Assembly: GCF_002113885.1 (NCBI RefSeq)
Contig: NW_018403901.1
Span: 162,742-226,741 of the forward strand
DNA from: Mizuhopecten yessoensis
Taxonomy: Eukaryota
Reading direction: 5' to 3'
DNA: 64,000 bases
Within the stretch, counting starts at the first letter, position 1, and each line of letters starts with the position of its first letter. The notes under the pieces are model-generated. The model saw only the letters and a list, made by a program, of their open reading frames with translations, searched no databases and was not told where the DNA came from. This document shows, piece by piece, positions 1 through 46,200 of the stretch. The translations under genes and the position numbers were made by a program.

Positions 1-3000
1 GCACTGTTATAAAGATCTATCCTAGTAGAATCAGTAAGTATACACTGGTACAAATATCCATCGTAGTAGAACCAGGAAGTATACACTGGTACAAATATCC
101 AACCTACCCCACATGACATATACACTGGTACAAAGATCCAACCTACCTCACATGACGTATACACTGGTACAAAGATCCAACCTACCCCACATGACGTATA
201 CACTGGTATAAAGATCCAACCCACCCCAGTGACGTATACACTGGTACAAAGATCCAACTTACCCCACACGACGTATATACTGGTACAAAGATTCAACCTA
301 CCTCAAATGACGTATACGCTGGTACAAAGATCCAACCTACCCCACATGACGTATACACTGGTATAAAGACCCAACCCGTCCCACGTGACGTATACACTAG
401 TACAAACACCCAACCTACCCCACATAACGTATACACTGGTACAAACACCCAACCTTCCCCACATGACGTATACACTGGTACAAAGATCCAACCTTCCCCA
501 AATGACGTATACACTGGTACAAGGATCCAACCTACCCCACATGACGTATACACTGCCACAAAACGTATACACTTGTACAAAGATCCAACCTATCCTACAT
601 GCCGTATACACTGCTACAAAGATCCAACCTACCCCACAAAACGTATACACTTGTACAAAGCTCCAACCTATCCTACATGCCGTATACACTGGTACAAAGA
701 TCCAACCTACCCCACATGACTTATACACTTGTACAAAGATCCAACCTATCCCACATGACGTATACATTGGTACAAAGATCCAACCTCCCCACATGACGTG
801 TACACTGGTACAAAGATCCAACCTAACCCACATGACGTAGACACTTGTACAAAGATCCAACCTATCCCACATGACGTATATATTGGTACAAGTATCCAAC
901 CTACCTCGCATGACTTATACACTTGTACAAAGATCCAACCTATCCCACAAGACGTATAAACTGGTACAAAGATCCAACCTACCCCCACATGACGTATACA
1001 CTGTTATAAAGATCTATCCTAGTAGAACCAGTAAATATACACTGGTACAAATATCCATCGTAGTAGAACCAGGAAGTATACACTGGTACAAAGATCCAAC
1101 CTACCCCACATGACATATACACTGGAACAAAGACCCAACCTACCCCAAATGACGTATACACTGGTATAAAGATCCAACCTACCCCACATGACGTATACAC
1201 TGGTACAAAAACCCAACCTACCCCACATGACGTATACGCTGGTACAAAGATCCACCTACCCCACATGACGTATACACTGGTACGAAGACCCAACCTACCC
1301 CACATGACGTATACACTGGTACAAAGACCCGACCTACCCCACATGACGTATACACTGGTACAAAGATCCAACCTACCCCACATGACGTATACACTGGTAT
1401 AAAGACCCAACCCGTCCCACGTGACGTATAAACTAGTACAAACACCCAACCTAACCCACATGACGTATACATTGGTACAAAGATCCAACCTACCCCACAT
1501 GACGTATACACTGGTACAAAGATCCAACTTACCCCACATGACGTATACACTTGTACGAAGATCCAACCCACCCCACATGCCGTATACACTTGTACAAAGA
1601 TTCAACCTATCCCACATGACGTGTACACTGGTACAAAGATCCAACCTACCCCACATGATGTATACACTGGTACAAAGATCCAACCTCCCCCACATGACAT
1701 ATACACTGGTACAAAGACCCAACCTACCCCAAATGACGTATACACTGGTACAAAGACCCAACCTATCCCACATGACGTGTACACTGGTACAAAGATCCAA
1801 CCTACCCCCACATGACGTATACACTGTTATAAAGATCCATCCTAATAGAACCAGGATGTATATACTGGTACAAATATCCATCGCAGTAGAACCAGGAAGT
1901 ATACACTGGTACAAGTATCCAATCTACCTCACTACCCCACATAACGTATACACTGGTACAAAGCCCCAACCTACCCCAAATGACGTATACACTGGGATAA
2001 AGATCCATCCTAGTAGAAGCAGGAAGTATACACTGGTAAAAAGACCCAACCCGTCCCACGTGACGTATACACTGTTATAAAGATCCAACCTACCCAAAAT
2101 GACGTATACACAGGTACAAGTATCACATGACGTATACACTAGTACAAACACCCAACCTACCCCACAAGACGTATATACAGGTACAAGTATCCAATCTACC
2201 TCACAAGACCCAACCTACCCCAAATGACGTATACACTGTTATAAAGATCCAACCTACCCAAAATGACGTATACACAGGTACAAGTATCTAATCTACCTCA
2301 CATGACGTATATACTGGTATAAAGATTCAACCTACCTCACATGACGTATACACTGGTACAAAGACCCAACCCACCCCAATGACGTATACACTGGTACAAC
2401 GACCCAACTTACCCCACAAGACGTATACACAGGTACAAGTATCCAATCTACCTCACAAGACGTATACACTGGTACAAAGATTTAACCTACGCCACATGAC
2501 GTATACACTGGTGCAAAAATCCAACCTACCCCACATGACGTATACACTGCTACAAAGATCCAACCTACCCCACAGGTCGTATATACTGGTACAAGTATCC
2601 AACCTACCTCACATGACGTTTACACTGGTACAAAGATCCAACCTACCCCACATGACGTATACACTGGCACAAAGATTCAACCTACGCCACATGACGTATA
2701 CACTGGTACAAAAATCCAACCTACCCCACATGACGTATACACAGGTACAAAGATACAACCTACCCCACAAGACGGAAACACTGGTACAATGATCCAACCT
2801 ACCCCACATGACGTATACACAGGTACAAAGATACAACATTCGTATAAACTGGTACAAAGATCCAACCTAACCCACATGACGTATACATTGGTACAAAGAT
2901 CCAACCTACCCCAAATGACGTATACACTGGTACAAGGATCCAACCTACCCCACATGACATATACACTGGTACAAAGATCCATCCTAGCCCACATGAGGTA

Positions 3001-3560
3001 TACACTGGTACAAAGATCCATCCTCCCCCACATGACGTATACACTGCTACAAAGATCCAACCTACCCCAAATGACGTATACACTGGTACAAGGATCCAAC
3101 CTACCCCACATGACATATACACTGGAACAAAGACCCAACCTACCCCACATGACGTAAACACTGGTACAAAGATCCATCCTCCCCCCCATGACGTATTCAC
3201 TGGTACAAAGATCCAACCTAACCCACATGACGTATACACTGGCACAAAGATCCCACCTACCCCGTGGACACTGTTATAAAGATCCATCCTAGTAGAACCA
3301 GGAAGTATACACTGGTGCAAAGATCCAACCTACCCCACGTGACGTATAGACTGAAGTATACACTGGTACAAAGATCCAGCCTACCCCACATGACGTATAC
3401 GCTGGTACAAAGATCCACCTACCCATAAAGATCCATCCTAGTAGATCCAGGAAGTATACACTGGTACAAAGATCCAATCTACCCCACATGACGTATACAA
3501 TGGTACAAAGACCCAACTTACCCCACATGACGTATACACGGGTACAAAGATCCAACCTAC
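1..3560 (-). repeat. 39-bp minisatellite built from the SLC5 paralog A exon-4 tail plus splice donor (about 90 copies, runs off the left edge)
   Basis: Minus-strand unit GTAGGTTGGATCTTTGTACCAGTGTATACGTCATGTGGG matches the last 39 nt of exon 3561-3620 with the donor GTAGGT. It is interspersed with about 41-bp units carrying the exon 5' half (TACTTCCTGGTTCTACTAGG). Confidence 0.95.
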
Positions 3561-5287
3561 CCCACATGACGTATACACTGGTACAAAGATCCATCCTAGT
3601 AGAACCAGGAAGTATACTGCCTGCAAAACAATGCTCACATAATGACAATATCCCGAATTGCAAAACAAGTAGTGTTTTTTGTTCTTTTGATATTAACTTT
3701 CATTTGTGTTACTTCTTGGAACTGCCATAACTGTGGAAAAGAATATACATTGGTTTGACAAGCTCCTTATGTATTTACATGTCGACGCTTAGTTTTTATT
3801 TTGAACAGAAAATGATAAATCATTTAAGCCGACGTAACACGTATACTGACAATCCACTCGTAGATGATGACAGCGATCCCTGAGGCAGCAGCCGATCCAG
3901 CTATCCCTATAAACATCGGGGCTCCAATGTTACTTGCGAATATAGAGGCGCCAACCTGTGTACGTTCAAAAGGAGATAAATCTATGTTTACAATTGTAAT
4001 TGCTTCCAAAGCACTAAGGAAAATGTTAATGGAAGTACTTGAAATCGTTCAGTACATCATTTTAATTCATAGATCTCTATCTGTTTAATAAAAGAAAGAA
4101 AAAGCAAAAACTTGGGAATGAAGTAATAATGAAACTTTCGGACAAACCCGTCCCTTTTAATTTATGGTAGAATATATGTTTTATGAAAACCTTATGAATT
4201 AACCAAATATGGATATCGTCCTTGTTTTCTTGTAAATGCGAAATAGTTTAGCTGCCTTCCAGGAAACCCATACAATAACTTAATAAATGCTTATTAAAGG
4301 GACATAACTCATAACGTTATATTGTATAGGTTTGTACAACACTATCTATTAGGTTGGCCATACAATGAATTACCGACATACAGGTATCCAGTGAATGTTC
4401 CTTCCCGCCAAAAAATAGCCATGAGCCGATCCTTTGTTAGAGCGACAGGTCGACTGTAACACAATACAGTGTAATCAGTCATCAAAGTACGACATTTAAA
4501 CGTTTTTAATTGATTATATAACAAACAATATCTAAATGTAACACAGCGAGTATATCATTTGTATAGCTAAATCTAGATATTCGAAGGTCGGAAATATTTT
4601 TATTTTAACATATGAACATTCTGAGTTATTTCTTTAGATCACTAGTATCATATTATTACAGTATGCATTGCAATAGCTAATTAAAATATTATTTTGCACA
4701 ACATTCTAATTTCAATTCTGAAGCACCAGTTTAAAACGGTATAATTAACTTATTAATCATTACTACATACAGGTTGCTATAACGATATTATTCGTTTATA
4801 ATTTTAATAATACTAGATGACAAGGTAAACATTTATTGACAACCAGATTTCTTTGGCATTTATTGGATATGAATTCAAATTTGACGGAATCCGTTGTTAA
4901 TTGAAGCGACAATATTGTAATACGATGAGCCGTGTAACACCCGATAGCATGTCATTAGGGGTGGCCTTTCGTACCGCCCAGTGGAGAGAGATTTCTATCT
5001 GACACTGACCGGGATCTGACCCATACCATCACTCTTATCTCTCTAGTAAATACAGTATATTACCTTTTTATTCCGGAAACTATTGTTCAATTGTCTACCC
5101 TCAAATGTATATCAGATTTGCAATCTGTTTGTGAGACGTATCTAAATTGTTTTCTTGCAATGAAAAGATAGCGAGGTAGAGACTACCGGTTACCTGACTA
5201 CTCACTCACCCATAATCCAACACCAAGGACTAACACAAAATATATCCCCATTGTTAAGTAGTCCTCCCATCCTAAATATTCCGCCAT
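3561..5287 (-). CDS. SLC5/SGLT-like sodium:solute symporter, paralog A (coding exons 1-4; gene continues off the left edge)
   Basis: Four GT-AG-bounded exons: 5287-5210 (MAEYLGWEDYLTMGIYFVLVLGVGLW), 4453-4382 (STCRSNKGSAHGYFLAGRNIHWIP), 3955-3851 ([35 protein letters not shown]), 3620-3561 ([20 protein letters not shown]). GYFLAG, ASNIG, EW and GWIFVPVY are SLC5 motifs. Exon sizes 78/72/105/60 are identical to the plus-strand paralog. Confidence 0.93.
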
Positions 5288-5797
5288 GTCAGCAAGGGGC
5301 CGCAGCACACACATACACTCTCAGATACGACGAGACTTAGTCGCTGATAACACTGATAAGACTCGAGGGCTATAGACTTACCTTCCATTACAGCACATAG
5401 TTCAAAATCAAAATACGGAGTTCGGTTGTTAAACATTGGGAAAAGTACAGTGTTCGAGATATCGAACCTCTGTTTGCACGTAGATAGGCTAGTAGGTGTA
5501 CGTGAATCAATACGAATCCAGTGGAATAGATCGAGCATCTAACAAAGAGGGGTGTTCACAAGAGTATATATATCACATATATGACTCACTTTATATGACA
5601 GTGCATCTTGCGCAAGAATAGGTCCTCTACATCAGCGTTCCTTGTCCGCGCTGCTCTCAGCTTAATTGCTGCCTTCGGCTGTCTTTAGCCGAGGGGACTA
5701 TTGGTTTTATATAATAGCTATATTTTCAATTATAGTATATCAATTCTATCTTCTTGTAATATGATGTATATGTGCATGTAACTGTTCTGCTTCACTG

Positions 5798-5836
5798 TGT
5801 CTTGAAAAAGGAGCGGATCGCTCCGAAAATTTGACA
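5798..5836 (+). other. Hammerhead-like motif with an atypical core, possibly a Penelope-like element terminus
   Basis: TGTC-TTGAAAAA-GGAGCG(GAT)CGCTCC-GAAA-ATTT-GACA: perfect 6-bp stem II followed by GAAA, palindromic AAATTT in place of stem III, TGTC/GACA closing stem I. The core deviates from CTGANGA. Confidence 0.4.
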
Positions 5837-6828
5837 ATCTAAACTTGTCCACACTGTTGGAATTACTTCTTTGCCCCATATACTATTTTAAGTAATTCGT
5901 ATCCTACGGACATACCTCCATTAGGATCCAGTGTTATATGGGATTTTACCGTCTATATTACTTCTTTGACCCATATCACATATATAATGTGTACTATCCA
6001 TGTATCCATGCCCTGTACCTTAATGGGCGGGAGGAGGGGGGGGNGGGGGGGAGGGGGGCTAAAACAAGGCCATTTGATGGCCAATGGGACCTAAGTCGAC
6101 GTTACGTTAGCGCGGGTACGCAGGTCGACCCTGTCCAAATAATTACAGCAATGCTATGTTAGCGCGGACGCACATGTCCATGTGTTTATAATAACTGACA
6201 AAATGGCAAAACTGTACAACACACTGGGACAGACAATTCGTCCACCTAATTTAACAACGTCTGTCAGCTTCATTTACTGAAATGAAGTAGCAACCGGCTG
6301 AGTCAACAATAAACCGATCTGTCAAAAAGCACCAGGTAGAAAAAGAAAATTAGAACAAAATCTTATTCGTTCATACCTTGAAAGTTACGCGGGTTTGTAC
6401 ATATGATGATGATCCAATATCTTTCCCTTGTGCGTCGTCTTTATTCATTCTGTGTTCGGCAATGATATAAGGCAACCACCTGCATGTTCTCCTAACTATG
6501 GCTATGCGTATTAAAGTACATTGCCACATGGACATCAGGTTTGATTTGCTTAATGGAGAAACGGAGCTCTTGATTTCGATACTGAGCTTTGTACCACATA
6601 CTGTATATGGTACACTTAACTGTGGGGGGTGTATAGACACAGTATGCACATATAAATGTTGCGTGTTCCAAAGAGTCTGTACTGCAGCAGAGGCGGTGTA
6701 GATGGATTGTTACCTTACGTAAGGATACTTTATATAATTTCGTCTGCGATATGCCATATGGGAAGATCTGACATGGCTTTGCTGAAAACTCAGCCAGTTT
6801 GCTTTCAAAATTGATAGAAATGTCGAAA

Positions 6829-8010
6829 TGTTACCGGGCCAGAAACAACACTAACAACTCAGTTGGTTCGAATTTTGTGGTCCTTTATTTCAGGGCTTAA
6901 CCCGAACAAGAAAACCTAAAAATACAAATAAAAATGAACAGTTACACACGGTTACACACAGCCACTCACATACCTACATATGTACCAAGGGAAATAACTC
7001 CTACTTGGTAAATTTACAAGTTTACCCTATTTCTATAAAATCCTTATATTTTCACGTAACGTTTATATATATAAATGTTACCATATTCCTTACATTTATT
7101 ATTAGATACATTTAACAGAACTTGACAGAATAAAGTTATCTTTCATTATTGAATATAATTAATGATGATACAGAATATGGTAATTTACACAGAACTTTCT
7201 CTATAAATTCTCACCATTGAATGCATATATACATGTACTTCTATACCTTATTGTATTTCAAATAAATAAATTATAATCTTAAGATGAAACATATATAGTA
7301 CATACCCTGCATAATTGGGCAAGGTTCTCAGTGCCAATTCCATTCTCACTTTTCCAACCATACAATATAAGCTAAATGAAAAATAAGGTAACTATGAAAA
7401 CTCATTGTAAAATGACATTTACCAATAACCTATACATTAGTTATTTTTGAGTCTCAATATTTTACTGAACAATATTGACTGGCGACCTTCAATGTCCTTG
7501 AAATAATTTACATATTCACATGGCTATTTTGTAGCAAAAATACCATAATTATCCTTAATTTAAATATTAATAATATCGACACTTTACATTTACTGCATAA
7601 AGCTTGCTGCAATAACAGGATGGTTACTTGTAAATAATCACTACCAATTTGAATAAAATATCAAGCCTTGGAATGACTTACCGGTTAATGTCCTGACTGT
7701 GGAGTCCCGCACACGTGCCCACCTGACTGACTATCCAGGTACATGCATTACCTAGCCTACCCTGATCTTAACACACGTCTTATTTAGACCAATCAAATGT
7801 CATTCTGTCTGTCAGGTGTCATATCAAGTACAGTGCTCACAGGTACAGGTAACACACAAACATTAAGGAAGAATTCTCCTTCATGTCCATGGTAATATTA
7901 TATTGGTACACCAGTAAAAGTATTTAAACAATATATATACATCTAATCAATATAAGCACACCCTATACATATACATAACACATGATTACTAAAATTATCA
8001 TACTGCCACA
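6829..8010 (-). mobile_element. LTR-like segment (possible solo LTR)
   Basis: Minus-strand termini TGTGGCAGTA...CCGGTAACA, with AATAAA about 60 bp from the 3' end. The termini resemble those of 25901-27257. No target-site duplication found. Confidence 0.3.
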
Positions 8011-9573
8011 TTGGGATGGTATGTAACTTCACAAGGTACCTTCTGTGTTCGAAATGACTTTTTTCTTTTAAGCTGACCTGTCAAGCCAAGTGTCCTGAGT
8101 TTGTCTATTACCCGATCTATGAAAGAAGATTTGTATCTTTTGCTTTCGAAGGTGACTATACGTCTGATGCACAGGTATTGAGATGCTCATTGTTGTGTGC
8201 AAGGGGTGACAACAGGATTAACGGATTAACTAGTGTATTGCAGTTGGTTTGCAGTGTAGGTCCTCGCTGATCTTTCCATCATTTACAGTGGAACGCGGAA
8301 CCGGTGGCTAAACAAATGACAGTGTCCGTTATAATATCCACTGTAAATTTGATGGTAGACCGGAACGCAAAGGAGTCCGACGAATATGTCCCAAAAATAC
8401 AACAGTATTGGGCCATCTTTGTGTGAAAGATGAAAATCTGACTTGTATTTAATTTGTTTTCGCGTTAAATATGAAGATTTTCAGTGTGAATACAAGTTTT
8501 AGTAAGTCCATTAGGATATCAGTCGATGGGTGTTTATCGTTCCAATGCATCTCAACTAGCAGCAATGTCGTCGTCATCTGTTATGATCGTGAAGAGGACA
8601 ACGACGTCCATCGTGACTAACAGGTTACCTTCTGGATGTTCCTGTTGGAAGTGTTGTTTAGATATATGTTGTACCATTTATATTCATAGCCGTAGATTTC
8701 CGACATTTGGTCGAAGATAGGAGTTTACATACATGGATGCATTAATGATGGGTGTACCTGAATTCCCAGGTTTATTGGTCTTTGGAAGGAATTGAAAAAA
8801 AATCCTGCTTTCGGGGGAAGATAGGGGGCGAGCGCAGGTTGTACATGTAAATAGTGTCTTGATCAAAATCTCTCTCACTTTATAGCCTCGTTTACCTGTC
8901 GGGCGTATTCAAGCGTCAGATCGATATCGACGATGTTTCGTTTGAACGCTGTCGCTATTCATATTGTGATGGGGAAACAAAACAGGGGACTATGTATTTA
9001 CACAGCTTAAAACAAATCTATATCATTTGTAGTTTGGAATTGCTGTGGAAACATGAAAAAGTACCAGGTGCACGAATGGCGTTGGGCTTCGCAATGTAAA
9101 TAATAATGTAAATAAACAAAAGAATAGTGTAATATATATTTTTTCATTTTTTTAAAGGTAAAAACAAAATTTATATATGGAAATATTAAGAAAACTGTTT
9201 GATTAACATTTTTTGTATAAAAATCTGAAGTGTCATCATCCGGAGGATATCTCAAATATACAACCATACATGTATGTATAAATGTATGTGAGTTTTAACT
9301 TTACAGCTTTACTGTTATAACAGAAATTGTATCTGTATGTAAACATATCTGTATGTAAACTCGATCTACAACACAACGATAACTGTTCAGTATCAAGCGA
9401 GATTTCCTTATGATGAACGTTGGTACGATTGACTCACACAAAATACACTAGAGCGTGACGATCGACCTTAACACGGGGGTTATATGATGTTTACCTACGC
9501 AGTGGATGGCCAGGGAAGTATCGGCTCACCTGAGTATATACCTGCCTCCTAATAATATGTAAATTTTGGAGGA

Positions 9574-9608
9574 TATATAAATCGCCCCGGTATATTCCTG
9601 GTCACTTT
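9574..9608 (+). promoter_or_regulatory. Putative TATA box and initiator of SLC5 paralog B
   Basis: TATATAAA at 9574-9581, Inr-like TCACTT about 28 bp downstream, ATG at 9700. Confidence 0.45.
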
Positions 9609-9699
9609 GTGTATACATGCGTCTGTACATTTTATCACTGATGTGCTTCAGCTGTTTAGAAGTGGCGAGACTACGAATCCACCTCAACTGATACCTAAG

Positions 9700-12600
9700 A
9701 TGACGGAAACACTCGGTTGGGGAGATTATCTTACCATCGGAATATACTTTGCTATTGTGCTTGTCGTCGGAATCCTGGTACGGTATGATTATAATACTCT
9801 TTCATGTTACATTGTTTTCCATTTTATGCATTACATATCCAGACGACAAGTTCCCTGAATAGAAAGGAGCCTTGTTCCTTTTATATACGTAATATGTGTG
9901 TATGGTTACGTGTTACCTGTGTGCAATGGACGTAACAGGTGTTTTGTTTCTGTATTATCATCACGTTAATAATCAATGACTACAGCTAGTCGCGTTGATC
10001 ATAATTTAAATACATGAGCTTTAATTTTGGAGACAGCGAAGGCGTTTAAGGCGTGTAAGGTCCTCCTGGTCCCTCAAAAAGAACAGAATGAAAGCACGGA
10101 CGATCACATGTTGTGTGTAAACAGTGTAGTAAAGGCATTGTGGCGTCCATTAAAATTGATGCTAGCCTTGTTGATTCAAAACAAATTTCGTTAATGGTAA
10201 AAACAGGAAAAAATTCCATATCCCCTTGACACTATCAAGCTTTATATCGTGGGTTTGTTATTCTGTATGGTCTGGATAGCATTTTTAAAGCATAGCCATA
10301 AATCTAAAGATTATGTGACGAAAATGCATGGATGCATGTTTTATAAGTTTGATTTAGTAATGTCATATATTTAAGATTGTCCATGAACCCTCACACTGAG
10401 GGCACCGATACAAACAGGATTTATATGTAAACCTGTCTCGCACTAGGATGGTCCATTGTTACCGTTCGCATGGTTACCGACCTCTACCCATTGTCAATAC
10501 ATGTGTTTGAGTCATCCTGGGCACAGGTAAAGCCCTAAACCATAAGTGTTATTGTAAACTCTTCACCATGCTATTCATTTCTTCTAATCATACATTTTAA
10601 AATATATCAATTACAATATGAATGTAAAAAAGATCGGTCATTGTATTGCAGTCAACATGTCGACCAAACAGAGGGAGTTCACAAGGCTATTTTCTGGCTG
10701 GCAAAGACATGCACTGGATACCGGTATGGTATTTCATATATACCTTAGTATCATGAAGTTAAATATAATACTCACATGATTATTTATTGGATGCATTGTT
10801 TAATATATAAAAAATAGCCATTACAGATACGATACATTACTGATTGAACTGATTATTATTGGACTAGAAGTTATATAATAGTCGCTCAATATTTCAACAC
10901 AGACATGTAAATGATATCAACATATTTCATTTCATCATATTTTATTGAGTAAACAATAGGATTGAACAGTAGGCTAGGACTATATAAGTTATCTCCTTAG
11001 GTTGACATGACAAAGACAAAGATGAATGAAATGGTTTGTAAGAAAATATTGATGCAAATTATATATAATAAGTAGCATAGACATATATATATATATATAT
11101 ATAGCAGATGGTATAGGGGAGATAATTCCATGTATGTTTCAATTACATATAAATATTTAATTGATATTTTTAGCTATACAATGCTCATATTAAAAAGTCA
11201 ATCATAATTAATTAGTAATAGGAAAGCAATGCCCTAATGATATATTAAACAGAGAAATTGCTACAATTGTTTTTTTGTTTTTTGTTTTGCAAGTCATTAG
11301 TGCCCCCTGTTCATACCCTGCTGCTGTTGCATGAAGTANTTTTACTTTATTGCACCCATCAGTAAAAACAGCACACAAAGCTTAATCCCTTAGGTGTATA
11401 ATATTAAAACATCAATGTATATATAACAATCAGAAGAATCACATAATGGTTTAAGGACAGTATTTTATCAGTTATGACTATATATAACAAAATTTATAGA
11501 TTGTTTTGATTAATTAAACAAGTCTTCTTGTGTTGTATATATATTTAAGAACACTATCAAGTATAGATTTATTTTCAGTATTGTTTAACACAGTGCTTCC
11601 ATTAAGAAGTGTTTTAGTATCAATATCAACATATCAGCTTCTATTATTGGTATTGGCATGTTTACAAAGTCAACTATGATAACTCTGATATTGCATTATG
11701 TGTATTATCATTAATGTCCCAATTACCATATATTTTAGATTGGAGCATCAATCTATGCCAGCAACATAGGCGCTCCGATGTTCATAGGTTTAGCGGGTTC
11801 AGCAGCAGCCTCTGGTCTAGCTGTCACGATATATGAATGGCATGTAAGTTTAAAGCACGGCAAGTACCATACAGAATCCTAACGTCTTTTTTCCCCATTA
11901 ACATGTCAATAAATTGAGAATAAAAATTACATGATTTAAATGTCCTTACAATATCATCAACTATATAAATATGAGTTGAAAACGTTTTGCCTGCATGAAA
12001 ACTGTACCTGAAATAAACCATTTCCGGAAAGAAACCAATCATTATGGAACTTTTGTATGAAAAAGAAGTAAATGTGAAATGAACAACAATAGATATCAAC
12101 TTTTATGTTCAGGGATAAAATAGAATAGTTGTACAACGGGCCAGGTCCTGGACCTTCAATAACGATACAGTCACTCTTACCACACACCAACGGAAATTCC
12201 TGTTCAGCGTAGCTCATCAGTCGAGTCCCTCTGCAGTAATATCAGAGACAAAATATAGGGGAGGCAAATGTATGCATATTGGGGCAGAGTCTTGGAACTA
12301 AACTATTGTTAAATAGTCTTCCATATCAAAGGGGAACTTTATATTGTAATGCATTGGTGGATCTAACATTCAGTTATTGGTATTCTAGCTTTATCGTGTA
12401 GTGAAGATTAGACTTGTTGTCTCTTCGCGATAATAAAAACTATATGAATGATTTCCACTGCATATTAGTTCGAATGAGTATGGCTTTTGTTTTGTGGTAA
12501 AAGAGTATCACATATCATTTATAAGTTTCTATGAAATTGAAAACTTATGTTTGCAAATTTTATAAAATCTATCTATGTTATATATAAACAGAAATAATCT

Positions 12601-21783: not shown

Positions 21784-21920
21784 AAAATCCCGTTCATGAG
21801 AGGGCGATATTGCATATTTTCACCCCTCGGAAAGCATTGTTGACCTTGGCTTCGTCTCGGTTAACAATGTTTCCTTGGGGTGAAAATATGCAATATCGCC
21901 CTCTCATAAATGGGATATTT
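21784..21920. repeat. Long inverted repeat (about 137-bp hairpin), probably the end of a non-autonomous fold-back element
   Basis: The perfect 31-bp arm ATGAGAGGGCGATATTGCATATTTTCACCCC pairs with GGGGTGAAAATATGCAATATCGCCCTCTCAT; the inner stem continues to a GGCTTCGTCT loop. Confidence 0.85.
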
Positions 21921-31513: not shown

Positions 31514-32289
31514 TGATGTGTATCTCCCAGGGAATCATCTCCATATAAGGAACTAAACGTGAATCAACTCCTAAAACACAAGTGTACTATGTATATATTT
31601 AATGTGTAAAAGTAAATATAACATTGGCTGATTGGGCAGTTGAATCTTTTTAGAATGCGCGTTTAGTTTAAAAAAAACACCTGTATATTATTGTATAATT
31701 TTGATAGGAAGTTTTGGAAATGATACAGAAAAAATATGTTTATCAACTTACCAGTCCATCAAGTTCCCAGAGAGATGAAATTATAACAAGTTTCACCTTG
31801 GAAAATTCTGACTTTGTGTGCAATGGCGGTTGACATATTAGGAAACTAATCTTACATTGGACAAGTCTCGTATATGATCTAGACTATAGGATTAAGATAA
31901 TCTGAGGTGTGCGTGTAAGTTCACTTGTTAATGCGAGTATTTAATTTATTAAACAGAGAGGGAGAGAGAAAGTAAACAATAATTAATCGGCTAATCATTA
32001 ACGGTTTGAATGTCATATGTATGTACATAGACACACTGTATACAGCACACAACTGTATACTCAATACCTGGCCCTTCATTCATCGCTCATTAAAAACCAA
32101 AATGAAAAAATGTACTGTTCTCAATGATCTTTGTATTCTTTGGACCTAAAGGAGTCTTCCCGAAAACTCGCTGCTCTCCATCTAATAAGAACATTGGATC
32201 AAAAAAGGTATAATATGATGCTCTCCAAATAAGTGATCTGTTTAATGTACATGTAATAAATAGGGTCTTTCGTTAGTGGTAATATTAGC

Positions 32290-33260: not shown

Positions 33261-34271
33261 AGTGTTCCTTTTGAGGGAAATAAAAGCGTCGGGTCGATCA
33301 ATATCTTTATAATGATTACAGACACACTCGCACAATACAATATACCTAAACCTACTGAGTTGTACCAGACAATATACTAAATAGCACTAGTACTGTTTGC
33401 ACAGCATATTGGCAGTACACTCCTGTGTAAGTAATGTATGCCTTTGGCAATTTGTCATTAAAGCATAGAAAATACATTACCTGCGTTCAAGTTTCCGTAA
33501 ATTTTATTTATAAATTTATAAAACTTTAGACATTGTAATTTCGTTTCACTATCAAATATAAAGAGAAAACAACACGGTGAGGTGATGTCTTATAATAGGG
33601 TAAGAGGACTTATAGCCCATACTGTTAACCGTGTGTGTTTGTAGCCGATACGACCGTTTCTATTGTACTACTTACTGTTGTTGGGATTTGTCGTGGTCAA
33701 CTGGACTGAACACTCTATGGATTTAAACTGGTCATTGTATCGTTGTTCACAAATCAAGCACGCATTTCACTCAAATGACGCTATAAGTATTAATGTAAAA
33801 GACGATCGCGACTAATACTAATACGGTTGTTTCATCATTATGAGAAAGTATTAACGACAAATTCCTCTTGACATTGGCAATATGATAACGACTGTCTGAG
33901 GGTGGTTGGTCGGAGGACTGACCAGTAAATAATAACATAAACAACCAAAACGGTCAGTAACCAGGCTCGGGAAACACAAATAATTGGAGTGACACATATA
34001 TTGTCGGATTTAAATAAGGGAACATGATGTCACCAGGTATGTAAAAAATCTCCTGCTTTATTTTGGAATGAAATTTGTATTGAATTAGTTAAATACGCGT
34101 TAAAAAGGAAGTTCCAGCTCGGTCAGTGGGCTGGTGTAGACGACCTTATTATCAGGTTACTGATATAAAACTTGTAACTTTGTTTGTAACACAAACATAC
34201 ATACATATACAGTGTGCATATTCAGTAAGAACGAACCTTAACTGTTCCTATTATTTATCCCAGGAAGGACT

Positions 34272-37200
34272 ATGGCGGGTTTCGGAGCGGGTTTCGGAGC
34301 GCCAATTATGTTATTGTTAATGATTATCACTCAAGGTAAGTGCTTCATAGAGTCTTGTTCAATAATGACTGTACACGTACATATTATGTACATATTGATT
34401 TAACGTGCCTCTGGTTGCTATCTCATTCATAAACCCTGTGGTTTATTGATTAAATATCTTCATTCATCAAAAGTATAACATGTATATGATTATTACCGAT
34501 ATATTACAAGTTTACAGAGTTGTATTGCTTTACATTAGAAAGTAGGTAAACTACATACATTATAAATTAAGGGGTATACGGTAACGATCCGAACAAAGTT
34601 ATTAGTGGCGTCGTACAACCACAATGTCTTCACAGAACTCCCGAATCTTAAATATGCATAGAACGACCCAATTGTTGTTACTGATATTTGTTTATCATAT
34701 TATTTCATTTATATTAAAAAGTGTTTCGATAATAGAAATGTTTGATATATAATATAAAGTTAACGACCATCTATTGGACAGTATTTGGTGTGTGCGACAT
34801 AGCGAACCGACGAGTAGAGACAGAGTTAATGGCCACACAAGATGTCGAGTACCTCTACTCCCCGGGATGGAGGATATCCTACTACTCGTAAGTACGGGAG
34901 GAGGGGAGGAGAGTTAGGATGTCCTATCCCTGTACATCTGGGGCATTATACTACTCGTAAGTACTGGAGAAGGAGAGGAAGGTAAGGATGTCCTAAATAT
35001 GTACGTCCGGGGTATTATACTCCTCATCGTAAATACTGGTGTAGGTTAGGAGAGTAAGGATGTCCTTTACCTGTATATCCGAGGTATCATACTCCTCGTA
35101 AATACTGGTGTAGGGTAGGAGAGTGAGGTTGTCCTTTACCTGTACATCCGGGGTAGCATGCTCCTCATCGTAAAAACTGGTGTAGGGTAGGAGAGTGAGA
35201 ATGTTTTTACCTGTACATCCGAGGTATCATTCTCCTCATCGTAAGTACTGGTGTAGGATAGGAGAGTGAGGATGACCTTTACCTTTACATCCGGGGTATC
35301 ATACTCCTCATCGTAAAAACTGGTGGAGGGTAGGAGAGTGAGGATGTCCGGTAGGAGAGTAAGGATGTCCTTTCCCTGTACATCCGGGGTATCATACTCC
35401 TCATCGTAAAAACTGGTGTAGGGTAGGAGAGTAAGGGTGTCATTTACCTGTACCCCCGAGGTATCATACTCCTCGTAAGTAATGGTGTAGGGCAGGAGAT
35501 TGAGGATGCCCTTTACCTGTACATCCGAGGTATCACTCTCCTCGTAAGTAATTGTGTAGGGTAGGAGAGTGAGGATGACCTTTACCTTTACATCCGGGGT
35601 ATCATACTCCTCGTAAGTAATTGTGTAGGGTAGGAGAGTGAGGATTCCTTTACCTGTACATCTGGGGTATCCCACTCCTCGTAAGTAATGGTGTAGGGGA
35701 GGAGAGTAAGGAGGTCCTTTACCTGTACATTCGAGGTATCGTACTCCTCGTAAATACTGGTGCAGGGTAGGAGAGTAAGGAGGTCCTTTGCCTGTACATT
35801 CGAGGTATCATACTCCTCGTAAAAACTGATGTAGGGTTGGAGAGTAAGGAGGTCCTTTACCTGAACATTCGAGGGATGACACTCCTCGCAAATACTGGGG
35901 TAGGGTAGGAGAGTGAGAATGTACTTTACCTGTACCGTAAAAACTGATGTAGGGTAGGAGAGTGAGGATGTCATTTACCTGTACATCCGAGATATCATAC
36001 TCCTCATCGTAAAAACTGATGTAGGGTAGGAGAGTGAGGATGTACTTTACCTGTCCCGTAAAAACTGATGTAGGGTAGGAGAGTAAGGATGTCATTTTCC
36101 TATACACCCGAGGTATCATACTCCTCGTAAGTAATGGTGAAGGGTAGGAGAGTAAGGAGGACCTTTACCTGTACATTCGAGGTATCCCACTCCTCGTAAA
36201 TACTGGTGTAGGGTCGGAGAGTAAGGATGACCTTTACCTGTTCATCCAGGGTATCATACTCCTCGTAAGTAATGGTGTCGGGTAGGACATTGAGGATGCC
36301 CTTTACCTGTACAGCCGAGTTATCATACTCCTCATCGTAAGGACTGGTGTAGGGTAGGAGAGTGAGAATGTACTTTACCTGTACCGTAAAAACTGATGTA
36401 GGGTAGGAGAGTAAGGATGGCCTTTACCTGTAAATCCGGGGTATCATACTCCTCGTAAATAATGGTGCAGGGTAGGAGAGTAAGGAGGTCCGTTACCTGT
36501 ACATTCGAGGTATCATACTCCTCGTAAATTCTGGTGCAGGGTAGGAGAGTAAGGAGGTCCTTTGCCTGTACATTCGAGGTATCATACTCCTCGTAAATTC
36601 TGGTGCAGGGTAGGAGAGTAAGGATGACCTTTACCTGTACATCCGGGGGATCATACTCCTCGTAAGTAATGGTGAAGGGTAGGAGAGTAAGGAGGACCTT
36701 TACCTGTACATTCGAGGTAGCATACTCCTCGTAAATACTGGTGCAGGGGAGGAGAGTAAGGAGGTCCTTTACCTGAACATTCGAGGGATGACACTCCTCG
36801 CAAATACTGGGGTAGGGTAGGAGAGTGAGAATGTTTTTACCTGTACATCATACTCCTCGTAAATACTGGTATAGGGTAGGAGAGTAAGGATGACCTTTAC
36901 CTGTTCATCCAGGGTATCATACTCCTCGTAAGTAATTGTGTAGGGTAGGAGAGTGAGGATTCCTTTACCTGTACATCTGGGGTATCCCACTCCTCGTAAG
37001 TAATGGTGTAGGGTAGGAGAGTAAGGAGGTCCTTTACCTGTACATTCGAGGTATCATACTCCTCGTAAATACTGGTGCAGGGTAGGAGAGTAAGGAGGTC
37101 CTTTACCTGTACATTCGAGGTATCATACTCCTCGTAAATACTGGTGCAGGGTAGGAGAGTGAGGATGTCCTTTACCTGTACATCCGAGGCATCACACTCC

Positions 37201-40200
37201 TCGTAAATACTGGTGCAGGGTAGGAGAGTGAGGATGTCCTTTACCTGTACATCCGAGGTATCACACTCCTCGTAAAAACTGATGTAGGGTTGGAGAGTAA
37301 GGAGGTCCTTTACCTGTACATCCGAGGTATCATATTCCTCGTAAATACTGGTGTAGGTTAGGAGAGTAAGGATGTCCTTTACCTGTACATCCGAGGTATC
37401 ACACTCCTCGTAAAAAATGATGTAGGGTTGGAGAGTAAGGAGGTCCTTTACCCGTACATCCGAGGGATCATATTCCTCGTAAATACTGGTGTAGGTTAGG
37501 AGAGTAAGGATGTCCTTTACCTGTACATCCGAGGAATCACACTCCTCGTAAATACTGGTGTAGGGTAGGAGAGTAAGGATGTCCTTTACCTGTACATCCG
37601 GGGTATCATACTCCTCATCGTAAAAAATTGGTGTAGGGTAGGAGAGTGAGGATGTCCTTCACCTGTACATCCGAGGTATCATACTCCTCATCGTAGGTAC
37701 AATGTACTGGTGTAGGGTAGGAGAGTGAGGATGTCCTATACATGTACATCCGGGGTATTATACTCCTCGTAAATACTGGTGTAGGGAAGGAGAGTAAGGA
37801 GGTCCTTTATCTGTACATTCGAGGTATCATACTCCTCATCGTAAGTAATGGTGTAGGGTAGGAGAGTGAGGATTCCTTTACCTGTACATCTGGGGTATCA
37901 CACTCCTCGTAAGTAATGGTGTAGGGTAGGAGAGTGAGGATGTCCTTTACCTGTGCATCCGAGGTATCATACTCCTCCCTCGTAAGTACTGGTGTAGGGT
38001 AGGAGAGTGAGGATGTTATTTACCTGTACATACGAGGTATCATACTCCTCATCGTAAGTAATGGTGTAGGGTAGGAGAGTGAGAATGTTTTTACCTGTAC
38101 ATCCGAGGTATCACACTCCTCGTAAGTAATTGTGTAGGGTAGGAGAGTGAGGATGTCCTTCACCTGTACATCCGAGGTATCATACTCCTCATCGTAGGTA
38201 CAATGTACTGGTGTAGGGTAGGAGAGTGAGGATGTCCTATACATGTACATCCGGGGTATTATACTCCTCATCGTAAGTGCTCGGATAGAAGAGAAAAAAA
38301 ATGGTCTATACCTCTACACTCGCGACAATATATTAACGGGGTAAGTGGGAGGAGAGTATAATCAGGATAGTTTGTTACACCATAAATAATAAGGTCGTTG
38401 GACAGAAGGGTTGGGGGTACGCTACAGACAGAAAGTAGAGTATCGAGTATAGTAAAGGGCTGTCTAAATGTTCAGTACAAAACACAGGTACCTAGGGGAT
38501 GAAATGTAGAGGAATGGTGTCTAAAAGTAACAAACAATGGTGGATTGAGAAATATTTTATCATATGTTGCTAATTAATGTCTGATCCATAGATTCGCAAT
38601 TAAATTAGATTTGTTCCCCTCAGAAATACGGATTGCAAATGGTTGATAAATGGTTCCGACACTGACTCAGCCTTCCGCGTCCTCGTTGACGTAACCTACC
38701 TCAGTATTGAGAACAGTCCCGGGTGTTCGTACGATGGGTTGTCTATCTACGATGGTAAGTTTGATGTGCATTTAATACAAAATTATCAGTTATTTTAGGT
38801 TTAACACACAAAAAATAAGACATTTTTGGCATAGGACATCGACGAAAGATGCCAAAATAAAAATGGCAAAAACGTATAAAAGAAAAAAAAAGAATAAAAT
38901 AACGCCATAAAATATATTTAAGCGTGTATCTGTCCAATTGCGTTACAGGATCGTCGACCAGCGCCACCCTTCTAGGCCGGATATGTAACCGTTTGCCTAC
39001 AGGACGGATGTACCTGATGACTGGTCAGTTCGCCTACCTCAGGCTTAAATCTGATTCCAGTGTACAGGCCACAGGTTTCTCCCTCCGATACCTCAAATAC
39101 AAACCCACCAGTAAGTATCCATTTCATTACTGACAAATATGAACATACCGGTAAGTATGCCTTATAGTACTGACAAATACAAACCTACCAGTAATAAGTA
39201 TGCCTTACAGTACTGACAAATACAAACCTACCAGTAAGTATGCCTTACAGTACTGACAAATATAAACCTGTCAGTAATAAGTATGCCTTACAGTACTGAC
39301 AAATACAAACCCACCAGTAAGTATGCCTTGCAGTACTGACAAATACAAACCCACCAGTAAGTATGCCTTACAGTACTGACAAATACAAACCTACCAGTAA
39401 GTATGCCTTACAGTACTGACAACTACAAACCTACCAGTAAGTATGCCTTACAGTACTGACAAATACAAACAAACAAATAATAAGTATGCCTTACAGTACT
39501 GACATATACAAACATAACAATAATAAGTATGCCTTACACTACTGACAAATACAAACCTACCAGTAATAAGTATGCCTTACCCTACTGACATATACAAACC
39601 TACCAGTTAATATGCCTTACAGTACCGACAAATACAAACATACAAGTAACAAGTATGCCTTACAGTCCTGACAAATAAAAACCTACCAGTAATAAGTATG
39701 CCTTACACTACTGACAAATACAACCCTACCAGTAATAAGTATGCCTTACAGTACTGACGAATACAAACAAACAAATAATAAGTATGCCTTACAGTACTGA
39801 CGTATACAAACATAACAATAATAAGTATGCCTTACCCTACTGACAAATACAAACCTACCAGTAAGTATGCCTTGCAGTACTGACAAATACAAACTTACCA
39901 GTAAGTAGTATGCCTTACAGTGCTGACATATACAAACCTACCAGTAATAAGTATGCCTTACAGTACTGACAAATACAAACCCACCAGTAAGTATGCCTTA
40001 CAGTACTGACAAATATAAACCTACCAGTAATAAGTATGCCTTACAGTACTGACAAATACAAACCTACCAGTTAATATGCCTTACAGTACTGACAAATACA
40101 AACATACAAGTAACAAGTATGCCTTACAGTACTGACAAATACAAACCTACCAGTAATAAGTATGCCTTACAGTACTGACAAATACAAACCCACCAGTAAG

Positions 40201-43200
40201 TATGCCTTGCAGTACTGACAAATACAAACCTACCAGTAAGTAGTATGCCTTACAGTGCTGACATATACAAACCTACCAGTAATAAGTATGCCTTACACTA
40301 CTGACCAATACAAACCTACCAGTAAGTATGCCTTACACTACTGACAAATACAAACCTACCAGTAATAAGTATGCCTTACAGTACTGACCAATACAAACCT
40401 ACCAGTAAGTATACCTTACAGTAATGACATATACAGTAGGCAAGTTTATCCTCACTGACAAATAAAGACCTACCTGTGAGTAAATGTAAATTGTAAATGT
40501 GAATCTATATGTAAGTAACTTTTTCTATAATGACAAATACGAGCCTACCTGTTAGCAAGATTTTCTTACTAGCAAGTACACAAGTAAGATTTTTGTTACT
40601 TGAAAAATACAAGTTTACCTGTAAATACGTTTCTTTAGTGAGAAATATAAGTTAATGTGTTAATATATTTCTATACTGACAATTGCAAGCCTACCTGTAG
40701 ATCATCTTTGATATACTGACAAATACAAGTCTACCTGTAGATAATCTTTGATATACTGACAAATACAAGTCTACCTGTAGATAATCTTCGATATACTGAC
40801 AAATACAAGTCTACCTGTAAACAGGCTTTGACTCACTGTCAAATACAAGTCTACCTGTAAACAGGCTTTGACTCGCTGTCAAATACAAGTCTACCTGTAA
40901 ACAGGCTTTGACTCACTATCAAATACAAGTCTACCTGTAAACAGGCTTTGACTCACTATCAAATACAAGTAAGTCAGCGAGATATCCTTTCTGAATGGTG
41001 GCTTATATACGACATCTCTTCGCTTTGTCGCCCGCGAAAACCCGCCAAAGCAAAATAGCTAAATAACGAAAAGCAGCTGTAATAATGTTAAGAATGGATA
41101 ACAACATTACAACACAAGTATAAAATATCACAGTCAGTTATGCATGTAACGCAGACTAAAAGATACTCATATGTAAAACAAAAGGAATTAGTGATAGCAA
41201 ATATTCTTTAACCGTACTTTGAACTCGGCGAGAGAGGAACGAAACATATAACATCTTGTGCAAAATCAAGATAGTTAAAACTGCATTGAATCCTGTTTAA
41301 AATACTATACTTTCTAACATTTATTCTACTTCTCTGGCAGTAAAACGAATTGATCGTAGATTACGACGTGGGACTAAAAAACACACAATCTAAAAGTGCC
41401 CGCCTATGTTCGAGGCTAGGAAGATTAAAATGCCTACAAGTGTCAGCGTAAAGCATGGAATTGTAGTCGACGTGTGCCTTAAAACATAAACATTTCAAAA
41501 ATTTACGCTGGACAACTTCGACCTGGTGAATTAAATATGTTTGGTAAGGAGACCGGATCTGACAACAGTATTCTAACTGACCCCTGACAAGACTTATATA
41601 TAAAGACCTTAAAACAGGTATTTGTGTAAAACTTTTACATGTACGTTTTATAAAACCGAGCATTCGCATTGATTTGGAAACAGTACGTCTAATGTGGGTA
41701 CTAAAACTCATCGAAGATGTCAGCCAAACACCAAGATCTTTCACACACATTTCATTCTTCAGGTTCTAACCGTTCATAGTGTAATTAAAATTCATACATT
41801 TCTTCTTGTTTGTAAAAATGACCTGGCAGCACTTCTTCACATTCACTTTCATTTTCCAAACATTGCACCAATCATACACTCTATCTATATCGCTCTGTAG
41901 TTGCTCATACCCAGACAACGTTCTTACAGACTTAAAATATTTGCTGTCGTCGGCAAACATAAGAGTTTTAGAAAATTTCACAATAGATGGCAGTTCATTG
42001 CTAAAAACAAGGAAAAGTTTAGGTCCAAGTATCGAACCTTGAGGCACACCGGAAGTTACATCACACCAACCGGATGTTGCCCCATTGACAGTAACACGCT
42101 GGAATCTGTCTTCCAATTTAGTAGTTAACCAATCTAAAATGCTACCTTCTACACCATACAATTTTAACTTATGCAATAATAATCTGTGGTTTATTTTGTC
42201 AAATGCCTTTGAAAAATCAGTATATACAGCATGTAATTCTACTTTTTTTATCAAACATGCAAGGTTTGAAACAGTAGACCTTTTTGGCATACAACCATGT
42301 TGCTCATCGCAGATAAGCGGATTTATAAAATTTGAAAAATGTACGTCAACCAGTTTTTCGAAAACTTAAGATATAATTGGTAGCAAAGAAACTGGTCTGT
42401 AATTAGAGACTTCATTATGTTTACCAGATTTAAAAATGGGAATAACATTAGCCCTTTTTAAAATATTTGAAAAGATACAATGTACCATCTTTCAATGAAC
42501 GGTTGAAAATGTTACACAGTGTACATATAACTCATCAGCACACTCTTTAAAAACTACGCCAGATATGTTGTCGTAGCCACAAGCTTGTTTTACATCTATT
42601 TGTGTAAGTGCCTTCTGAACATCAGTACAATTCAAAACAATATGTAGATATTTAATTCAATCCTACATTGTAATTACAAAATGATATCATTGTCACGGAT
42701 CTAGAAGGTAGGGAATGTGTTGATTATCATACATCATATCATCATAGACATAATTGATTGTGATAGGTACCTTTGAAGTTTAATATTTCTGTTGACAGCC
42801 CCGTCTACAGCGTGTACAAGCACCGTGTCACTGACGGCCAGCACCACGCTGCAATATCTGACGTCACCAGACTTTCCTAGCCAGCAGAACGCGTACGTAT
42901 TTTACGTACTTTCTCAGACAAATGTATTTTTTTAACGGGTAATGTTAACTGATAGTTGTGTTTTATATAACTGTTTTTTATACATTGCTAATATCACTTG
43001 TTACTTTATACTATTCCCGAAATCCACGACTATCTCTAATGTGTAATTCATCGGGACTATGACACATTTGTAAATTTCCTTTAGGCTCCTTAAGTTTAAA
43101 AGATGAATATCGAATTAAAAAGTATTTGATCTAATTGGTTGGTCAAATTTCATCAGATTTGACACCTGTACCTGGCTGATAAGCGCGAGTAGTGGCTCCA

Positions 43201-46200
43201 GTACTCTGACCGTCAATGTTGTGTTCCTGGACATCGATGGAGAGGAGATGCTTTCTATATACGATGGTAAGGGACAACAGGAATGCCTACATTATATGGA
43301 TCAACCAATATAAGATTTTTTTTTAAAGTAGGGCGTAATTACGCCGTCTATTTGTTGTAAGGTAACATTCCGAAGTCAAATACTTTCCATAAAAATGTGT
43401 TTCCCTTGAAGAAACCTGTCAAAATTTTCCAAAAATTCAGAACTAGTTACATATTCGCATTCTTCTATTCAACTTAGTAGAATCAAAATTCGACCCAAAT
43501 TCAACCATACGAAACACATGATATATAATAACTTGTTTATGAAAAGTGCCTATTTCATGGTGAATCGTTCTACATGTACTCTTGTGTCAATCTGGAAATT
43601 TTATAATTTGGTGTTTTTCACAATTTATTATGTCCACATATATTCGCATTCTGCATATAATGCGTCTATGAGACCGATTTTGTTGAAATTGATGAAATTA
43701 ATAATTTTGTACAATATGTATATTTGAGTTCAATACCGGGCGCATTCGGAACCCTTTTGAAACATGGTAATACAAAAAAGCACAGAAGAAATCTGACTGC
43801 GACCGATATTGTGTCGTCATCATAGATGCCAAAGCGCAATAATAAGAAACTGTGGTTTATCTGTTTGCGTCTCTTAAATTTTTGTATATGTATATGTCAT
43901 TAACTGTCAAGGTTCGGACAATACTGCGACCCAGCTGGTCAGCCTCAGCAATGATAGGACAACCTTCACGGACGGGTCAACAGTGACCACCACTGGTGAC
44001 AAGGCCTACATACAGTTTAGCACCGCTGTCATGGATTCCGTCCGGTTAGGGTTCATCGTGTCTTACAACGAGTCGAGCTCCACTGCGACGACAACGGCGT
44101 CCGCGCTGACAACAGGTAAGTAATCAATCGACGTCCACGCTGACAACAGGTAAGTTATCAATCTATGTCCATGCCGACAACAGGTAAGTAATCAATCGAC
44201 GTCGACGCTGACAACAGGTAAGTAATCAATCGACGTCTACGCTGACAACAGGTAAGTAATCAATCTATGTCCACGCCGACAACAGGTAAGTAATCCATCG
44301 ACGTCGACGCTGACAACAGGTAAGTAATCAATCGACGTCCACGCTGACAACAGGTAAGTAATCAATCTACGTCCGCGGTGACATCAGGTTAGTAATCAAT
44401 CGACGTCCACGCTGACATCAGGTAAGTAATCAATCGACGTCCACGCTGACAACAGGTTAGTTAACAATCAACGTCTACGGCAACAACATGTTATTTATCA
44501 AACGATCTCAACAGCTACAACAGGTTAGTACACATTCGCGACCGCGCTGACAACAGGTTAGTAATCAATCTACGTCCGCGGTGACATCAGGTTAGTAATC
44601 AATCTACGTCTGTCTGTAGCAACAATAGCGACAACAAGTAAATAAACAAACAACTTCCACGGCGACAACATGTTAGTTATTAATCTACGTCCACGGCGAC
44701 AACAGGTTAGTTAACAATCGACGCCCGCAGTGATATCAGGTTATTAAACGGTTGACGTCCGCGATGACAACAGGTAAGGCATCAGTGGAACTTTGGAATG
44801 ACGACGAGTATATGATCAGTCGATGTCCCGGGCAACAATAGTCAACATTTTGAGACAGGGGTAACAACTGCTATAGCTTTTCTAGAGTAGCCGTTTAATT
44901 AATACAATCTTATTAAACCACGAGTTAGACGACCTAGGTTATTGTGGATATCAAGCCGGTTTGACAACGAGCACGTTCACATGCATGGACAAATAAATCG
45001 TTTAGTAGCGTCTTGTGTGAATATCAGTGAGGAATGAAATGATCCGGATGAGGATTTTCTTTAAAATAATAAAAAAATAAACAAATATTGCATCGAGAAT
45101 TGACTCATCAAACCCTTCTAATACTTAGTCGATCTCATTCAATAATTCTTTACGGATCATACTTTTAAACTAATATTTCTTTCTCTTTAAGGAATACCTA
45201 TACACTCAAGGGCATACTACAGTATATGCATTATCTCATTTTCTATCTAGTTGCCACCACGTCTGCCGCTCCAGTCGTAGCCACTACAACCTACACGGCC
45301 CCTTCAGCGTGTGACTCCGGAACCATCACCATCACCGCAACGTCCGGGTCATCAGGATACATCACCACACCCGACTACCCGGAGTTCTACGGACAGTAAG
45401 CTATTACTCAAATCTAATTGGTTTGATCATATGTAAATATGTCTGAAAATGACGCATAAAAGAGAAGAACAAGAAGTCAGCCAGGGAAGGGGCACCTTTG
45501 GTTCACATGATTTTGCAAATACTGAAACAAAATGTTGCCAACGAATTTGTACAAATGCTTTTAGATAAAATCATATAAATAGCAATTTACATTTGGGATG
45601 AAAACTGTGTCTGCCTTTTGGTCTAAAATAAAAGGAATGGCCAAGGTTTTGTTTCTCATTATGTTTATGACATTTAGTCAATGGTACCTATTGAAACACT
45701 ACGTGAACTTACATAATAGTTTTCTATGTAGATTTATTGCAGGTTTCTGATGGTACTACTATAACACAAATATAAGCCATTCCGTAACATCGTTTTGTAG
45801 TGTCAAATTTGGGGGGGGGGGGGGGGGGGGNTCTCTTGTTGTGCTCCGGAACTGATCATGCTCTTATTTCTCTTCCGGTTTTCCCAAAAGTGCATGTTCT
45901 GTTATCCCAAAATGTTATATTATTTACTGTTACCGATGCTGACGATGTTGATGTTGTCCACTTCCATAGTAACCTGGCCTGTAGCTGGGTGGTACAGGCG
46001 TCTGCAGGAGAACAAATATCACTGACTGCAGTCGACTCGTCGCTGGAGGACAGTGACGGCTGTAGTGGCGACGTGGTCTCCATCTACGACGGTACGACAA
46101 CAACACAGATAACATAGGTCGTTTTATTGAACTGGTGTTCCGAAACATTTCAGATTTCTATTGGTTACGTCTTGTAACACACCCTGCAGTTACTAATAAT

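Follow-up and report, generated by a model that had tools for sequence, protein, structure and literature searches.

Junction-reiterating minisatellites in introns of scallop SLC5 and CUB-domain genes

Why should four unrelated minisatellites in one stretch of a scallop genome each begin exactly at the 3' end of an exon? The question is posed by 64,000 nt of Mizuhopecten yessoensis DNA, called here, at its full length, the window. Its four donor minisatellites, A1 to A4, have units of 39, 69/72, 40/43 and 34 bp, respectively. A1 lies in SLC5A, a minus-strand sodium:solute symporter gene (XP_021364343.1) whose 5' half falls in the window, and A2-A4 lie in the CUB-domain gene CUB1. An original prediction invoked either a mutational process focused at 5' splice sites (donors) or a selective filter in which such duplications survive because the first donor keeps the mRNA intact. 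We favour the answer that A1-A4 are probably mirage-type junction minisatellites, which a repeat-prone genome yields as by-products and tolerates, shaped by local duplication, expansion and longer survival. Biased birth of duplications at donors is the main rival to this answer, and a tentative one.

Tandem Repeats Finder reports all four arrays at the places listed in Table 1. Exon mapping and junction matching bear out the description of four unrelated arrays at exon 3' boundaries, with a unit made of exon tail plus donor: the array starts are true coding-exon ends followed by their own donor, in an SLC5 transporter gene and in a CUB-domain gene. XP_021364343.1 maps exactly, and orthologues and paralogues conserve the exon ends. 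Each unit finds its best match at its own junction among 78 junction windows tested and beats 200 of 200 shuffles (p=0.005). The A1 consensus reproduces the real exon tail exactly (donor after 3561, minus strand), with a mean copy identity of 92%. The exonic part of the units had been put at 17-45 nt, which holds for A1 (33), A3 (17) and A4 (18). The A2 unit derives instead from the last 47 exon nt, of which 8 were lost by deletion, plus 30 intron nt, and its exon-derived part is 57-66% identical to the present-day exon. A3 comprises about 32 homogeneous copies up to 40435, a degenerate stretch, and a diverged 40-bp sub-array of the A3 unit at 40672-40970. The units had been called donor-bearing or donor-derived, and not every one bears a donor: among the copies scored, GT is retained in 117/154 of A1, 47/49 of A2, 37/42 of A3 and 18/18 of A4 (76-100%). 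A donor as strong as the authentic one is found in 89, 13, 13 and 8 copies of A1 to A4, respectively. The predicted total of about 190 units over about 9 kb is close to what the window holds, about 200 units in some 9.5 kb. The predicted extent of A1 is correct inside the window and too short outside it. Position 1 adjoins a gap of 2718 N, beyond which A1 goes on with 75 further copies, giving at least about 165 units, the last of them about 180 nt before the next acceptor. As judged from sequence, A1-A4 fit the structural features of a mirage, or junction-reiterating minisatellite, that could be examined.

The gap that breaks A1 invites the view that the arrays were made or multiplied by the assembler, the more so as this assembly has many gaps and copy numbers may be wrong. 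Against this, almost all units are distinct variants (71/74, 49/50, 27/32 and 17/18), and exact repeats inside the window extend to 45-138 nt at most. Independent assemblies of Pecten, Ylistrum and Argopecten also contain such arrays, four of them at orthologous donors, and the probability of an assembly artefact is negligible in our estimate. A second gap (24790-24921) has no bearing on the finding because it touches no A1-A4 array and no exon. The arrays bear the marks of concerted evolution: higher-order periods are present alongside the unit variants, and boundary units are less homogenised (the first units of A2, the first copy and the 3' sub-array of A3, and the first units at the A3 donor of Pecten). 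The original prediction had also considered that the units might be dispersed independently of these exons. Across the window and the nine loci searched, no match to an A1-A4 unit was found away from its own locus or from orthologous or homologous exons, and within that space the units appear to be locus-specific rather than pieces of a dispersed satellite or transposon.

In each array the first unit leaves the functional exon end and its donor intact, together with 6 or more intron nt, and the extra copies are intronic and lie downstream. Use of a later donor in A2, A3 or A4 would meet a stop within 1-7 codons. In A1, copies 1 and 2 are in frame and would add 13 and 26 amino acids, and the frame closes after 40 codons. 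The first spare A1 donor (window 3522), 39 nt downstream and in frame, has a better consensus hexamer than the authentic donor. The A1 copies are under no coding constraint: mismatches by codon position number 138/121/162, without bias, and in-frame stops occur in 16/163 units. In four scallops the NCBI models of SLC5A agree on where exon 4 ends and are almost equally long, whether an array is present or not. A transcript contig from Argopecten, a species without an array at that donor, contains the same exon 4-5 junction. These gene models and the read-through stops are consistent with normal splicing at the authentic site.

The arrays could instead be functional, their decoy donors tuning splicing or mRNA level via nonsense-mediated decay, or A1 providing an in-frame ladder of SLC5A isoforms. 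The many copies with donors equal in strength to the real one, the in-frame first A1 copy with its better hexamer, the use of proximal pseudo-sites by human CBS and 6-16, and the endurance of A2 through three species would suit such a role. It sits badly, however, with copy numbers and units that vary widely by species, with several orthologues that carry no array, with the lack of coding constraint in A1, and with published mirages, which leave splicing undisturbed; an A1 insertion would moreover probably fall in or beside a hydrophobic membrane segment. We regard a functional role as very improbable. A regulatory function is unnecessary to explain the arrays, and nothing indicates one.

The history of these donors can be followed in other scallops, as the original prediction had proposed for orthologous introns. 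The comparison covers the A1-A3 donors, the fetched CUB1 orthologue loci stopping short of A4; the CUB orthologues were reached solely via the flanks of SLC5 loci, and an exon-by-exon CUB search gave no match, which says nothing about longer proteins. SLC5A has an identical 14-exon structure in four scallops and CUB1 exon ends are the same where comparable. Arrays are found at 4/7 orthologous donors against 3/111 unselected donors, and no interior array was common to orthologous introns. The paralogous exon ends at 12739 (SLC5B) and at 54154, 59617 and 61943 (CUB2) have no junction array, as had been predicted. Their value as an internal control is weak, since orthologues carry arrays at the same donors.

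SLC5A intron 4 measures 9385 bp in M. yessoensis, 153 in Pecten maximus, 238 in Argopecten irradians and 882 in Ylistrum balloti. The Ylistrum intron opens with its own donor array, three copies of a 51-bp unit (45 exon + 6 intron nt). Because each species' unit matches its own exon, the exon 4 donor appears to have seeded arrays on two separate occasions (33+6 nt in M. yessoensis, 45+6 nt in Ylistrum). The A2 donor behaves differently. Its orthologues carry arrays of 76 bp x 7.5 in Ylistrum and 87 bp x 2.3 in Pecten; the arrays of the three species begin at the same exonic base, the 47-nt breakpoint, and the units of each are 57-66% identical to all three exons, none nearer to its own. The shared breakpoint and the equal distance from all three exons point to one old origin of A2 common to the three species. 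Similarity of intron heads was set aside as proof of this shared origin, ordinary orthologous intron heads aligning in 5/13 cases. A2 would be at least tens of millions of years old; the divergence of Pecten from Amusium is put at some 130 million years (PMC10225492). Pecten carries a 33-bp array at the A3 donor, its exon part of 16-17 nt resembling that of A3, and Ylistrum has no array there within the 108 nt visible.

Further junction arrays were met without being sought. M. yessoensis SLC5A has a fifth donor array outside the window, at exon 13 (57 bp x 3; L001:33713-34152), which continues as nine copies of a derived 32-bp unit no longer carrying the donor. Donor arrays also follow exon 6 of Pecten maximus SLC5A (40 bp x 30; L002:12847-14045) and exon 5 of a Pecten maximus paralogue (53 bp x 17; L008:14658-15579). 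In Argopecten irradians, a donor array with a 28-bp unit and at least 247 copies extends over more than 6.8 kb directly after an SRCR exon of an SRCR-domain gene (L004:1-6884, minus strand). A Pecten interior array of 35 bp x 106 (L008:18968-22831) nearly fills a 4-kb intron, from 77 nt past the donor to 78 nt before the acceptor, and copies neither junction. The pattern had been described as donor-specific. No acceptor array occurs inside the window, but the Pecten maximus orthologue of SLC5A has an 18-copy array of a 34-bp unit at the exon 2 acceptor (L002:10617-11236). Since acceptor arrays occur too, the pattern is junction-linked and not confined to donors.

Is this more than chance? In the window, chosen for the pattern, 4/9 intronic arrays include a donor junction, compared with 0.4-0.5 expected (P<0.001). 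The unselected set consists of 111 scallop introns not chosen for arrays and excludes the A1-A3 orthologues; it is small and stems from one gene neighbourhood. The null is uniform seeding on array-collapsed introns. These introns hold 10 arrays, 3 at donors, 1 at an acceptor and 6 interior. Junction arrays (4/10, against 0.6-1.4 expected) are thus in about 3- to 6-fold excess, with P 0.002-0.04 depending on the null, and donor arrays alone number 3 against 0.4-0.7 expected (P 0.005-0.03). A bias towards donors over acceptors is suggested by the tally over all events and is not significant in the unselected introns (3:1, p 0.31). Pure chance in a repeat-rich genome would mean uniform seeding plus tolerance, with a window picked for its coincidence of four. 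The window was indeed selected for its pattern, P is just 0.04 under the most generous null, and no junction array is found in several genes (SLC5B, SLC5C and both Argopecten SLC5 genes). Yet the excess is present in introns not chosen for arrays too, and the recurrence at orthologous donors is far above background. We judge pure chance to be quite improbable.

Tolerated junction minisatellites of the mirage type, the answer we favour, would arise and endure in five steps. A short local tandem duplication, produced by replication slippage or microhomology-mediated repair, would by chance span a donor; a footprint of this step is visible in A1 only, as a 4-nt exon/donor match exactly one period (39 nt) apart. 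The exon and its first donor are kept intact, as the anatomy shows, so that the extra copies are intronic. They lie only downstream because a copied segment that spans the donor must lie past the functional exon end. The downstream-only extension noted in the original prediction is therefore real, and as evidence of a transcription-linked process it fails, being forced by geometry. The upstream-most donor would then be used, by analogy with human F7 and amphioxus and in agreement with the gene models, and leaks to later A2-A4 donors should be degraded. Unequal exchange and conversion expand and homogenise the copies, as the unit variants, the higher-order periods and the drift of A2 from its exon show. 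Finally, the junction excess would come mainly from longer survival beside a conserved exon and donor, old remnants persisting and re-expanding, as at A2 and probably A3. We infer this longer survival because junction arrays are shared between species and interior arrays are not. The setting is rich in repeats: tandem repeats make up 19% of the window, 21.7% of the Amusium genome (PMC10225492) and 11.3% of the Chlamys genome (PMC5700196).

Several observations weigh against this account. The selective filter of the original prediction fits the anatomy and the published analogues and explains survival and polarity; a pure filter nevertheless predicts no excess of junctions over intron interiors, and an excess is seen. 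Persistence as the cause of that excess is drawn from just two arrays. Clear microhomology is found in 1/8 arrays (A1), and as a general breakpoint feature it was rejected. The two apparent origins at the SLC5A exon 4 donor, and an 8:1 ratio of donor to acceptor arrays over all events (p 0.02-0.07, in a partly selected sample), also count on this side.

The main rival is a junction-focused mutational process, in which some feature of the 5' splice site (co-transcriptional pausing, R-loops, the edges of nucleosomes or of methylation, or repair linked to U1) would raise the birth of duplications at scallop donors, with the filter and unequal exchange acting afterwards. The junction excess in unselected introns, the apparently separate origins and the 8:1 tally speak in its favour, as do donor arrays that are young and homogeneous in all four scallops, the Argopecten SRCR array among them. 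The sample is small, though, and drawn from one gene neighbourhood; acceptor arrays exist, and tolerated acceptor duplications need more intron signal, which alone predicts fewer of them. Shared old arrays raise standing counts without any birth bias, and interior arrays show no donor-motif excess (combined p 0.57). The units carry intron sequence and so are not mRNA-templated. The original prediction was right to suspect more than chance, given the modest excess in unselected introns; seeding by R-loops or an RNA template has no positive evidence. We hold this process to be unlikely, if less so than the other alternatives. It is equally doubtful that a scallop process has a preference for 5' splice sites when it seeds tandem duplications, with genome- and lineage-wide intron growth and recurrent birth at particular donors. 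Were it real, splicing signals and germline mutation could be linked measurably through mirages, and hundreds of scallop loci would serve as natural tests, in an invertebrate, of how the upstream-most donor is chosen.

The remaining features of the window provide the context of these arrays (Table 1). Positions 1-15287 are identical to M. yessoensis scaffold NEDP02000574.1 (GCA_002113885.2). Eight arrays other than A1-A4 were tested against junctions and none matched; those at 16800, 18955, 21512, 24511, 32381-33169, 54916 and 58011 were rejected as junction arrays, with no match beyond chance. The array at 16800-17039 (40 bp x 6, 146 nt past the donor at 16654) has a weak exon-end resemblance (single-test p 0.014) that is not significant over all junctions, and is possibly a decayed, displaced junction array. 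The small CUB gene has no junction arrays, and contains 28- and 51-bp interior arrays at 32381-33169. SLC5A and SLC5B face apart in M. yessoensis and form a same-strand tandem in Ylistrum and Argopecten (window 1-20831 versus L003, L004 and L009); M. yessoensis has a local inversion with an extra paralogue, SLC5C. The GenBank model OWF55618.1 (P0280; window ~1650-20831) has 1190 aa and reads A1 antisense as a repeat of about 540 aa fused to SLC5B, a fusion that is almost certainly an annotation artefact. By eye, decayed reverse-transcriptase-like fragments of LINE type (long interspersed element) are seen in CUB1 and CUB2 introns (~41600-42600 and ~55300-57250), a tRNA-like, SINE-like (short interspersed element) insertion in a CUB2 intron (~59170-59370), and two similar copies of a dispersed repeat of about 150 bp (~15780-15935 and ~41090-41240). 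A short element whose terminal inverted repeats are long, resembling a MITE (miniature inverted-repeat transposable element), occurs at window ~21790-21910 and at L009 ~26720-26870.

Table 1. Arrays, parent exons, genes and gap in the 64,000-nt window
Feature	Position	Strand	Remarks
A1	1-3560	-	39-bp unit (33 exon + 6 intron nt), ~90 copies in window; SLC5A intron 4
SLC5A exon 4, parent of A1	3561-3620	-	XP_021364343.1
SLC5A exons 1-3	5210-5287, 4382-4453, 3851-3955	-	
A2	34888-38290	+	69/72-bp unit, ~49 copies
CUB1 exon, parent of A2	34782-34887	+	donor after 34887
A3	39111-40970	+	40/43-bp unit (17 exon + 23/26 intron nt)
CUB1 exon, parent of A3	38949-39110	+	donor after 39110
A4	44116-44780	+	34-bp unit (18 exon + 16 intron nt), ~18-20 copies
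CUB1 exon, parent of A4	43911-44115	+	donor after 44115
CUB1, host of A2-A4	34024-49224	+	multi-CUB single-pass membrane protein gene; product of 638-639 aa in Ylistrum and in Pecten
CUB2, CUB1 paralogue	53283-64000	+	runs past window end
SLC5B, complete SLC5A paralogue	9705-20831	+	XP_021364424.1; exon 4 at 12680-12739, without array
SLC5B interior arrays	16800-17039 and 18955-19072		
Third, small CUB gene	28346-33730	-	206 aa in Pecten and Ylistrum, with a signal peptide, a single CUB domain and a single membrane helix
Assembly gap	24790-24921	.	inside intergenic 21-bp array 24511-25123, same unit both sides

The value of these loci lies in scale and comparison, with many large cases in several assembled scallop species. 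With so many cases, biased birth could be told apart from longer survival, and it could be seen whether the spliceosome invariably picks the first among a hundred identical donors. Introns grow up to 60-fold through the arrays, which also break assemblies, as the gap in A1 shows, and mislead gene callers, as in OWF55618.1. New here is that junction arrays are a few times commoner than chance in scallops and can persist at one donor across species.

The original prediction knew of no named system of this kind. The architecture is in fact already known, as amphioxus mirages and as human donor-reiterating variable number tandem repeats (VNTRs), and the locus itself is not a discovery. A literature search found no paper on mollusc mirages, most subscription papers being beyond its reach. 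The original paper on the amphioxus Adh3 mirage is reportedly that of Canestro et al. 2002. Intron gain by tandem duplication is said to be treated in the Rogers model, by Zhuo et al. 2007 and by Gao and Lynch 2009. As in that model, internal tandem duplication with splice signals makes intronic sequence here, but existing introns only grow and no new intron position appears. Intron gain itself is ruled out, no new position being found relative to orthologues (the 14 exons of SLC5A in four scallops, and CUB1 where comparable).

Human donor-reiterating VNTRs are found in F7 intron 7 (37 bp), CBS intron 13, 6-16/IFI6 intron 2, LMNB2 and PDGF intron 4 (PMC1557585). They use the upstream-most donor alone, or together with one or two proximal copies, and for F7 selection of the upstream-most donor has been shown experimentally (PMC1557585). 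The likeness is close: the boundary between exon and intron lies within the first unit, so that the donor recurs further downstream, and unit sizes are similar (37-100 bp in human). The human cases are, however, scattered single loci of 5-25 copies, whereas three arrays lie in one gene here and fill kilobases, and an F7 unit includes 4 exon nt against 17-47 in the scallop units.

Amphioxus mirages, described in Adh3, globins BflGb6 and BflGb9, troponin C and PGBD5, lie at both 5' and 3' boundaries with unit sizes of 10-160 bp, undergo concerted evolution and leave splicing undisturbed (PMC3087553, PMC3902484). They were proposed as a route to intron gain, and their origin was called unclear (PMC3087553, PMC3902484). 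An amphioxus SLC5 gene showed no mirage in its 14 introns, a search of low power. Length polymorphism and normal splicing have been shown in amphioxus, whereas the scallop arrays are known from sequence, with only between-species differences. Like amphioxus, the scallop lineage has arrays at both donor and acceptor boundaries, the latter at Pecten SLC5A exon 2. Scallop arrays reach far higher copy numbers (at least 165 in A1, at least 247 in the Argopecten SRCR gene) than BflGb6 with its 3-6, and to the amphioxus picture the scallops add persistence at one donor across species and a measured excess at junctions.

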